Below are positions 50,377 through 53,300 of a stretch of 64,000 bases of DNA, piece after piece; the stretch's first letter is position 1, and each line of letters starts with the position of its first letter. The translations under genes were made by a program, and so were the position numbers. Location of the stretch: positions 6,448,001 through 6,512,000 of the forward strand of contig CP075494.1 of assembly GCA_021613535.1 (NCBI GenBank), in the 5' to 3' direction. The notes under the pieces are model-generated. The model ran no database searches, was not told where the DNA came from, and saw nothing but the letters and a program-made list of their open reading frames with translations. Source of the stretch: Adineta vaga (Eukaryota; Animalia; Rotifera).

Positions 50377-53300
50377 TTATGATGGTGGTGGACCAGGCGG
50401 TAATGGTGGTTGTTTTGCTGTTTGACCGTACATTGAATAAGATGGTGGATACATGGGGGGTGGTGGATAAGACATTTGATTGTAGAATCCACCATAAGCA
50501 TTACTTGTCGATGTTGCTGAAGAAGAAGAAGAAGACGATGGTAAGGTGGAAGGTGGTTGAGATCTTTGTGTATGCATGCCATTTCCATTGATTGATGATG
50601 AATAAGGTTGTCGAGTATGGTCATCCTAAAGAAGAATCACATTTTTAATGATGAAAAAAGAAATCGATGATTAGAAGTGCATACATACTCGAGACTGATC
50701 TGTTCGAGGTCGCTTATTATTTCCATAGGAATTATCATCAAAACGTGATGGACGTGCTGGTGGACTACGACTTCGTGAACGTTTATTACCAAAACGAGTT
50801 GGGCGCGGATTGCTATTATTATAGCTATTTCCACCACGATTACCACTCATACCATTTCTTCGATCAAATCCTAAGTAAAGAAAGGAATTACCTATGAAAA
50901 TAATCAATCAATCATTTGATATAACGTACCTCCTCGATAACTACCTCCACCACGACCATTATTGAAAAATTTCGTTTTTGCCATTTCGTATAATTTTTCA
51001 TTGACATCTTGATTTGAATCTTTTAATAATTGAATCAATTCTTGTGCTTGTTTGGCATTTTCACGAGTAAAGAAACTATATGCAGTACCCTTTGCACCTG
51101 AACGTGCAGTACGTCCAATACGATGAACGTAATCTTCTGTTTGTGGTGGATAATCAAGATTAATAACAATACGTACATCTTCCACATCTGAATATTAACA
51201 AATCAATTATTTAAAGTTCCTCTAATAGATCTCTTTTCAATAATAAGATCAGAATCTGCGATCATGACGACATATAAATCTTACTCTTGTTTCCTCATGA
51301 AAAAAAGCCCCCATTCTTCACCCATTTTTCTCTTATAACTGAATCTTATTCAAAGCATAAAAGAAAAAGAAATTAAGAAAAAAACATATGAAAATATTAC
51401 CGTGCTTCTAGTCCAAGATGTTCAACGACCGCCAATATTTTCTTATGTGTACGCATTGGTATCGAACGAGTATCTTACCACATCTGTTCGAAGACAATAC
51501 GAGAACACAGTTGAGCGGCACGCCGAACGTCGATTATGACTTAGCACAAATGTAATCAAATTTGTAAACGTCGTCATGTCACAAGACTTAAGTAGTCATT
51601 CGATACGCGTAGTTTCTTTTTCTCTCTCTGTCTGTATTGCTTGATAAATCAGCAATGAGATTGCAGGCACGCCTCTGCCTTAAAGACGCACCTGCAAAAA
51701 TAGAAATTCAGACAGAGTTATAGCAATAAAATGAACTTGTTTAAATGGAATCATCCCTATGAGAAAATAACATACCTAAACCACGTGCAGCAACATCGGT
51801 TGCAATGAGAACAACGCGAGATCGATTACGAAATTCTATACGCAAAGAAAAGATTCACAATTGATAAAAGGAATATATGATAACTAACCTTGTAAAACTC
51901 GATCACGTTCTTGTTGACGTTTATCTCCATGAATCGGAAAAGCTGGATATCCAAGACGTTTAATTGTGAAGTAGAAATCATCTACACGCTTCTTTGTTTG
52001 AGCAAAAATGATCACTTTACAATCTTGATCTCTCATAACAGCTGCTAAAACTTTTGATAATCTATATGAAACAAAAGAAAAATATGCAAATGAATCCATT
52101 CAGTTAGGTAATAGATCATACTTCGATTCTTTTTCATGTTCTTCACAAACATCAACGATTTGATGAATATTTTGATTAGCATTTAAAATTGCCTTTCCTA
52201 ATGTTATATGAGAACAATTTGTCATGAAATCTGATGCTAATTTTTGAACTTCTTTTGGCCATGTCGCACTGAACATAGCAGTTTGACGATCTGGCTAAAA
52301 TATTATTGAAGAAAGAAATACACCGTTTTATATGATAAATTCTCCGAATGAAAATGAATTACCCGAATACATTTAATAATTTTTCGTATTTGTGGTTCAA
52401 AACCCATATCAAGCATTCGATCGGCTTCGTCCAAAACAAGAAATGTCACTCGATCGAGATTAATCGTTTTTTCTCGAACGAAATCTAATAGACGACCTGG
52501 TGTTGCAATACAAATTTCAATGCCATAACGTATATCACGTTTCTGTGGTGGTTTTGGTGCACCACCATAGATACAGACACTACGTGAATTTGTTGCAGCA
52601 CAAAAATCAGCTCCGACAACTTGAATTTGCTGGGCTAATTCACGTGTAGGTGCTAGAATTAATACCAATGGATCACCTGATCGTGAGTTTGATTGACCAC
52701 TAGCATGAATTAAAGCGGGTACCATGAACTAAAAGATGAATGATTAAGAAGAGATGAAATCTATTTCCAAAGAAAAAAAGTTTTCTTACCGATAAAGTCT
52801 TTCCGGAACCTGTTTGTGCGATGCCAACAAGATCATTTCCACTTAATAAAATTGGCCATGCTTGAGACTGAATAGAAGTTGGTCGAATATAACCAAGTTG
52901 ATTCATGACATTTTGAATAGATCCTAAAGAGTACAATTATTGCAAAATAAGATGAAATATGAAGAATAAATCTTACCAGGAAATTGAATTTCATCAAATG
53001 AAAGTATTGGTTTTGGTGCAAATCCACGTATAGACATTTCATTTTGTACGTAGAATTGTTCAGTAACATGCTATTATACGAGAAAAAAAACATAAGATAT
53101 TTTTCTTTCAATTCAAAGAGAAAAAATCATATTACTTGTGGACGATTGGAAATCAAAGGTGATTCGGAATAGAAATTTTTTATGACTGGTGGTCCGGGAC
53201 GTAATGGTGCAGTGGTAAATGAATCGAGATCATCGAGTAAATTATTTCCACCATGTCGATCACGATCATTGCTTCGATGATTTCCTCCGTATGAACCTAA

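Follow-up and report, generated by a model that had tools for sequence, protein, structure and literature searches.

DEAD-box helicases of the DDX5/Dbp2 family act in RNA remodelling across the genome and are kept at a tightly controlled dosage. The intron of yeast DBP2 was reportedly tied to autoregulation by Barta and Iggo in 1995. The DBP2 family was reported to conserve the position of its intron and to have an intron of unusual length (Kilchert et al. 2015, PMC4695336). In yeasts, the dbp2/DBP2 intron shows inefficient splicing, retention and lowered expression, and its retention in S. cerevisiae needs active helicase (PMC4695336). In mammals, the level of p68 controls the pool of partially spliced p68/p72 pre-mRNA (Jalal et al. 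2007, PMC1920232), and the retained intron of DDX5 was described as being without a poison cassette (Brugiolo et al. 2017, PMC5737842). In plants, the DEAD hairpin in DRH1/RH14 and RH46 hides an alternative 3' splice site, and splicing moves toward the non-coding forms when the stem is opened or an active, but not a mutant, helicase is added (Sack et al. 2025, PMC12218528; Burgardt et al. 2026, bioRxiv 10.64898/2026.01.23.701338). This motif was called plant-specific and absent from algae, and the authors asked whether such sensors are commoner (PMC12218528; 10.64898/2026.01.23.701338). Here we analyzed a DDX5/Dbp2-type helicase gene in a stretch of 64,000 nucleotides (nt) from the bdelloid rotifer Adineta vaga (contig CP075494.1, positions 6,448,001 to 6,512,000), called the window in this text. 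Its oversized intron in motif V carries a structured poison cassette, which is a real and conserved regulatory element. We put about even chances on the fuller reading, that this intron (51188-51775) represents the family's ancient motif-V intron and that its cassette gives feedback by unwinding activity, probably that of DDX5 itself. What is new here is an animal variant, at the ancient position of the family, of a helicase intron with a splice acceptor enclosed in a hairpin.

The RNA evidence consisted of assembled contigs, not raw reads. Runs X1, X19 and X5 were spliced RNA, and run X16 was DNA. X5 came from a sister organism ("organism B") whose exons were about 98% identical to the window. 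All ten junctions of the helicase gene, including 51187/51776 across the long intron, were present in RNA contigs of the three runs. Pfam matched the DEAD and Helicase_C domains when the exons were searched singly, and the exon-by-exon translation contained the motifs GSGKT, DEAD, SAT, ARGLD and HRIGRT. The exon-9 homologues were labelled DDX5/DBP2 by their sources. Open reading frames P0001-P0006, which contain exon 9, were set aside as genomic read-throughs, not transcripts. Nine introns of the gene measured 53-68 nt and the tenth measured 588 nt. This was in line with the preliminary description of the locus, which had noted an intron about ten times longer than the others splitting ARGL/D (the slash marks the splice point). 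Motif VI (HRIGRT) is encoded in the exon after it. We take the ARGL/D site to be the intron position of the yeast and human genes (PMC4695336; reportedly also Iggo et al. 1991). By position, the rotifer element belongs to the conserved-intron lineage of DBP2/DDX5, and no report of a hairpin-masked cassette in this lineage was found in the literature.

Uniqueness was searched in a genome of 100.8 Mb (six contigs, about 30% G+C, with the window on contig 5). The long intron matched itself alone and the hairpin model R1 matched this locus alone, so an origin from a repeat or transposon was rejected. The nearest paralogue (L012:3933-5262; contig 6, 6247933-6249261) had a 59-nt intron at the same ARGL/D position, and this intron contained neither cassette nor hairpin. 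Since the best paralogue was only 46% identical (40-77% across exons) and had this short intron, no within-genome comparison was possible. No close ohnologue of the gene is left in the genome.

The internal acceptor AG of the long intron (51693-51692) was located in a stem, with a pyrimidine tract before the AG. The hairpin at 51697-51661 had an energy of -23.9 kcal/mol with a z of -5.0, and none of 200 shuffles was as good. It was the lowest-energy fold among 15,988 segments of 49 nt on both strands of the window, where the runner-up reached -20.7. The antisense strand of the hairpin folded to just -14.1, which meant that the G.U strand asymmetry was real. Folding, the shuffle test and reading of the sequence thus bore out two earlier claims, that a strong internal acceptor has its AG inside a 16-bp stem, and that the non-Watson-Crick pairs are G.U on the transcribed strand and A.C on the other. 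Sub-intron A, which precedes the acceptor, was of ordinary size for the introns of this genome.

Nine orthologous loci were found via exon-9 homologues. They showed the same exon plan, with a long intron of 316-717 nt at the ARGL/D site alone. Nine further metagenome loci of low G+C were fetched by an 18-nt anchor at the far end of the cassette. The anchor lies 200-250 nt from the hairpin, and therefore this sample was unbiased toward the hairpin. The 5' arm of the hairpin was found in all eight of the anchor-fetched loci with enough upstream sequence. Fifteen orthologous rotifer loci had the long intron, the hairpin, a stop-filled cassette of 267-370 nt and an invariant CG/GUAAU donor. All 16 rotifer sequences had the hairpin, with stems of 13-16 bp, loops of 4-8 nt and an acceptor AG that never changed. 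Stem conservation in orthologues, the lack of which had been set beforehand as a possible refutation, therefore held. The internal acceptor always read UUGCAG/G in the rotifer orthologues, and the canonical acceptor was a weak AAG in four of nine.

Conservation began at the acceptor and ended at the invariant donor. All 15 cassettes contained an in-frame stop together with stops in all three frames, and their length was not kept modulo 3. Identity to the window in the hairpin and in the 3' part of the cassette was above that of four-fold degenerate sites (Table 1). The block is thus an exon that does not code for protein and that strong purifying selection maintains. A premature stop ahead of further exon junctions, in a non-coding but conserved exon, as expected of a poison cassette, was thus found at this locus. 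In the stem alignment of the 16 sequences, 96.3% of cells paired, compared with 31-57% with slid partners. Nine pairs never varied, four varied on one side alone (G-C/G.U and U.G/U-A), and the loop was hypervariable. Four observations speak for selection on structure: two invariant blocks are complementary over 13-16 bp, the loop between them varies, the two strands are asymmetric and the folding energy is an outlier.

When the cassette was included, reading from exon 8 gave 34 codons (GASLRQRR...YRMTT) and then TAA (51590-51588), before motif VI. Translation thus upheld the claim that inclusion truncates the helicase before this motif. RNAalifold predicted nested helices across the conserved 190 nt of the cassette. 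In addition, the cassette donor is predicted to be base-paired, a point missed in the preliminary description. In this donor helix (RNAalifold columns 71-77 with 426-432), 13-15 of 15 sequences paired per position and the changes were one-sided. The consensus fold of the 3' part of the cassette showed zero two-sided changes in the 15 sequences. A further hairpin at window 51462-51491 (UCGAAC at 51491-51486 paired with GUUCGA at 51467-51462) had 6-8 bp in all 15 sequences, and its loop contained the GT at 51479. This GT had been put forward as a second donor. Several species have GGAC in its place, and the RNA contigs of X1, X19 and X5 contained no junction at 51479. The structure is conserved and the proposed alternative donor is not, and this donor was rejected. 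A long-range duplex of 51568-51578 with 51263-51273 had 11 bp in the window, and six of the nine full-length rotifer introns scored 8-11 bp. L021, a seventh, contained the motifs of both arms, and its score was taken from the wrong 5' arm. This duplex is predicted to loop out the cassette donor. The whole-intron fold had a z of -5.0.

In the RNA contigs, the long intron was covered at a depth of 10-16, compared with 26-41 for canonical junction contigs. Retention contigs covered 51160-51805 in X1, and 51401-51805 and 51160-51430 in X19. Full retention was the form in X1 and was prominent in X19. Bins over two other introns that were checked (50625-50687 and 50870-50928) fitted exon-only cover exactly. 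Since these introns were uncovered and the long intron was covered, the retention was specific and was not DNA carry-over. In these contigs the long intron thus showed the inefficient splicing or retention reported for the motif-V intron of DDX5/Dbp2 genes. The junction 51187/51401 (CT..AC) was found in X19 and X5, and its presence in two runs meant that the cassette donor was used. For the acceptor, the evidence came from one X5 contig end at 51689. In this contig, 29 exon-9 letters were followed by 51401-51689 and by another 24 letters, and X5 gave zero cover of 51188-51400. Because 51690-51693 reads the same as 51774-51777, a junction at the 51692 acceptor can be placed as far left as 51689, which is where this contig ends. 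Had the contig been colinear, it would have continued through the invariant UUGCAG. Judged from this contig end, the 51692 acceptor was probably used in the sister organism. Among the junctions that had been named in advance, the one from 51401 to downstream was therefore seen (X19 and X5), the one from 51479 was not, and 51776 to 51691 was not seen in the species of the window.

Table 1. Positions of the helicase gene and of the elements of its long intron in the window, with identity of orthologous rotifer sequences to the window
Feature	Position	Strand	Identity to window	Remarks
DDX5/Dbp2-type DEAD-box helicase gene	50376..53399	(-)		11 coding exons; RGG-rich N- and C-terminal tails
Long intron	51188..51775	(-)		588 nt, GT..AG, at ARGL/DVEDV in motif V; removal gives productive mRNA
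Sub-intron A	51692..51775	(-)	15-49% (A and B); A alone 25-49% apart from acceptor	84 nt; ends in pyrimidine tract and internal acceptor UUGCAG
Hairpin	51661..51697	(-)	81-86%	16 bp (12 Watson-Crick and 4 G.U), 5-nt loop; acceptor AG at stem pairs 5-6 from base
Poison cassette, non-coding	51401..51691	(-)		291 nt; conservation from acceptor to donor
AUUGCUG, predicted partner of cassette donor 51402-51396	51650..51656	(-)		RNAalifold; would close structured domain
First in-frame stop TAA after cassette inclusion	51588..51590	(-)		from translation
Cassette middle			15-36%	
Conserved 3' two-thirds of cassette	51401..51589	(-)	71-78%	predicted nested helices
Cassette donor CG/GUAAU	51396..51402	(-)		last exon base 51401; invariant in 15/15 sequences; used in RNA
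Sub-intron B	51188..51400	(-)	15-49% (A and B)	213 nt; spliced out alone in some transcripts (junction 51187/51401)
Sole conserved block of sub-intron B	51263..51273	(-)		complementary to 51578-51568 in cassette
Four-fold degenerate sites			30-60%	

Two further observations were made on the contigs. The DNA run X16 differed from the window at many sites in nearby exons and short introns, and its contig over 51169-51733 showed zero differences. In RNA and DNA contigs, window 51796-51806 was joined to 52398-52634, with ends (CG..TT, AA..GG, GA..TC) that were not splice-like. The DNA run also had one of these joints. Rather than RNA processing, the joints look like crossing-over of DEAD-box paralogues during assembly, at their conserved motifs.

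We propose the following mechanism. Productive splicing joins 51776 to 51187 and skips the cassette. Three other outcomes are unproductive: full retention, use of donor 51401 alone, and cassette inclusion via 51692. Each of these places a stop before motif VI, so that no helicase is made. The internal acceptor is strong, and with sub-intron A it matches a normal rotifer intron in size and in signals, yet skipping predominates, and therefore the internal sites must be repressed. Pairing of these sites would be the simplest means of repression. The 16-bp hairpin would mask the acceptor by pairing its AG, and the second predicted helix would pair the cassette donor. RNA unwinding, probably by the DDX5 protein itself, would open the fold and expose the internal sites. 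The opened pre-mRNA would then be diverted to dead-end products, which would give negative feedback. We infer masking by structure, the helicase as opener and decay of the products; for the helicase as opener, the plant, yeast and mammal relatives serve as the analogy. On this analogy, the helicase-sensor reading is plausible.

Several points weigh against this proposal. Use of donor 51401 alone, which the preliminary description had missed, already gives an unproductive mRNA. This meant that the hairpin is not the sole or sufficient gate, and the lock is probably the fold as a whole. The poison exon gated by a hairpin, as first described, was thus retained in part: the conserved stop-carrying cassette (51691-51401), the acceptor in a conserved hairpin, the use of donor 51401 and the specific retention were found, and the hairpin as the sole gate was abandoned. 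In X19, a contig was colinear over 51401-51805, upstream of the donor, so sub-intron A was kept there and the 51692 acceptor was unused. Cassette inclusion in the species of the window was rare, absent in the samples, or lost by the assembler. In X5, the acceptor joint is placed by way of the contig end, and contig depth is a poor measure of abundance. Covariation of the stem across relatives had been suggested as a check, and no two-sided compensatory change was seen in any stem pair of the 16 sequences, because the arms were nearly invariant. The 5' arm is invariant and G/U-rich, and of the 14 transitions open to the 3' arm, about 10 (71%) would still pair on composition alone. Therefore the one-sided changes are no proof of selection on structure, and covariation is not claimed. 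A shuffle control for covariation was uninformative since the 5' arm was invariant. Conservation of the arms could also come from sequence-specific protein binding.

Such binding leads to a different account, in which regulation would act by retention alone. The fold would be a platform for proteins or the helicase that slows splicing, and the unspliced RNA would be retained in the nucleus or decayed, as in yeasts; we find this rather doubtful. On this view the internal splice sites are side effects or little-used outlets, and the hairpin serves for binding and not as a mask, which we doubt to the same degree. Full retention in X1 and its prominence in X19 agree with this account, and the absence of two-sided covariation fits sequence recognition. 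In addition, the homologous intron of S. pombe promotes decay of unspliced RNA via Mmi1 and retention in S. cerevisiae needs active Dbp2 (PMC4695336), low p68 clears partially spliced p68/p72 pre-mRNA (PMC1920232), and a poison cassette was said to be lacking from the retained intron of DDX5 (PMC5737842). However, retention alone is at odds with conservation that is bounded exactly by a consensus acceptor and an invariant, used donor. It is also at odds with the cassette-like end of the X5 contig and with invariant arms that are complementary over 13-16 bp while the loop between them is free to vary.

The fold could also be a constitutive aid to splicing that compacts the 588-nt intron, hides decoys and brings 51776 and 51188 together, with no sensing. 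The genome is built around introns of some 60 nt, and the small size of the other introns of the gene (53-68 nt) and the z of the whole-intron fold (-5.0) are in its favor, and the predicted nested helices and long-range duplex would shorten the path. However, such an aid leaves the long stop-filled intron unexplained, as the contig 6 paralogue manages with 59 nt at this site. It does not explain the specific retention, and autoregulation via the intron is documented family-wide. We consider it distinctly unlikely. We hold it very improbable that the intron hosts a non-coding RNA gene that includes the hairpin, such as a microRNA (miRNA), a small nucleolar RNA (snoRNA) or another. The fold is strong and the block is deeply conserved, and a miRNA was reportedly described from the homologous human intron (Moore et al. 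2011, cited in PMC4695336). However, the stem of 16 bp with a loop of 4-8 nt is too short for an animal pri-miRNA (about 33 bp), and the ends of the block are splice sites, one of which is used. No Rfam family matched in the gene or the window, where the best hit, mir-316 (E 0.53), scored 21.5 bits and fell short of its cut-off of 80, and none matched in the nine orthologous loci. On these null results, miRNA and snoRNA identities were rejected.

The reading of a structured poison cassette was compared with the known systems. Plant DEAD-motif sequences were taken from the paper supplement; the Sinapis locus L023 was discarded for this comparison, being a degenerate paralogue with an intron of about 100 nt at motif V and no DEAD motif. 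Like the rotifer element, the plant motif is a single long hairpin in an unusually long intron of a DDX5-orthologous helicase gene, with the AG of an alternative 3' splice site at the stem's foot (pairs 5-6 in the rotifer, where its use in RNA is probable). In both, the isoforms comprise coding, cassette (probable in the rotifer), partial retention and full retention forms, all non-coding forms have stops, and the protein has an RGG-rich tail. Both alternative exons begin AG/GUGCG, which is the sole sequence shared. However, the plant intron is located just upstream of the Q motif, whereas the rotifer intron is located in motif V. The plant stem has 19-20 bp with a loop of 3-5 nt, compared with 16 bp in the window and 13-16 bp with loops of 4-8 nt in the orthologues. 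No sequence or covariance-model relation between the two was detected (no Rfam match). Unlike the plant motif, the rotifer cassette has an extra large conserved fold and a predicted paired donor. The plant function was shown experimentally, whereas the rotifer element is known here from sequence and RNA contigs. We class the rotifer element as an analogue of the plant DEAD motif and not a member, with the plant element the closest in logic.

Ultraconserved poison exons of SR proteins and hnRNPs are stop-carrying cassettes conserved above synonymous sites, and they serve autoregulation. Like them, the rotifer cassette is a conserved non-coding stop cassette in the gene of an RNA-processing factor. 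However, those exons are read by sequence-specific binding of their own protein, whereas the rotifer helicase is without sequence specificity and the sites of its cassette are predicted to be paired. Mammalian DDX5/DDX17 belong to the same family and have a conserved retained intron, and the helicase level sets the partially spliced pool. Set against the rotifer by description, they differ in that no poison cassette was described and an miRNA was proposed. Yeast DBP2 and intron 2 of S. pombe dbp2 likewise have a long, retained intron in a family of conserved intron position. However, the yeast mechanism is retention with decay by Mmi1/exosome, and no cassette exon or acceptor-masking hairpin was reported there (PMC4695336).

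Beyond rotifers, two orthologues (L068 and L070) had exon 9 57-60% identical and introns of 941 and 872 nt at ARGL/D. One of them adjoins a gene for which a sponge protein is the closest named relative (63% identity, compared with at most 42% for other named animals), and both are probably sponge orthologues. In L068 (3355-3420) and L070 (4300-4375), the most stable hairpin of the intron began at a pyrimidine tract and UUGCAG/G. The z was -2.4 in L068 and -3.7 in L070, where the stem foot was UUGCAGGCA/UGCCUGCAG. The rotifer model R1 detected neither hairpin, so the architecture alone is shared, and sequence homology of the hairpins across phyla was rejected. The rotifer and sponge-like hairpins have in common the clamp of UUGCAGG with CCUGCA alone, and their upper stems are unrelated. 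The intron-poor orthologue L069 retains this intron alone (about 540 nt), and no hairpin over an AG was found in it. As a tentative possibility, masking of a strong internal 3' splice site, together with the donor that partners it, by RNA helices in the ancient motif-V intron may be an ancestral animal, possibly older, way for DDX5/Dbp2 to measure its own unwinding.

The intron of L070 had two other features. Its second most stable hairpin (about 4799-4858) contained a GG/GUGAGU donor-like site. A 19-nt direct repeat occurred twice (about 4400-4430 and 4950-4975), with one copy ending at a GUG/GUAAAG donor-like site and the other near the canonical acceptor. Among the rotifers, the orthologous loci L014, L016, L017, L018, L021 and L022 had the helicase between a zf-AN1 gene on its upstream side and a BAH-domain gene on its downstream side, which meant that local gene order was preserved among these diverged rotifers. 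Elsewhere in the window, an intronless ART-TPR gene (40970-43045) had relatives numbering more than 1,800. Those with names were almost all from Adineta steineri and Rotaria, which makes this a large lineage-specific expansion.

Since 1995 the conserved intron of this family has been linked with autoregulation in yeast, but no structural mechanism for animals came with that link. A helicase of this kind is without a sequence-specific feedback site, and a fold that hides splice sites turns its unwinding activity into a signal. The present locus is an animal case at the ancient intron of the family, with deep conservation and RNA evidence. If ancestral masking is true, it would be the mechanism behind the intron autoregulation reported since 1995, and the plant DEAD motif would be the same device, either evolved convergently or relocated. 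The shared clamp with unrelated upper stems would then be the expected remnant of long-term selection on pairing alone. The sponge-like orthologues hint that this design may be widespread in animals.

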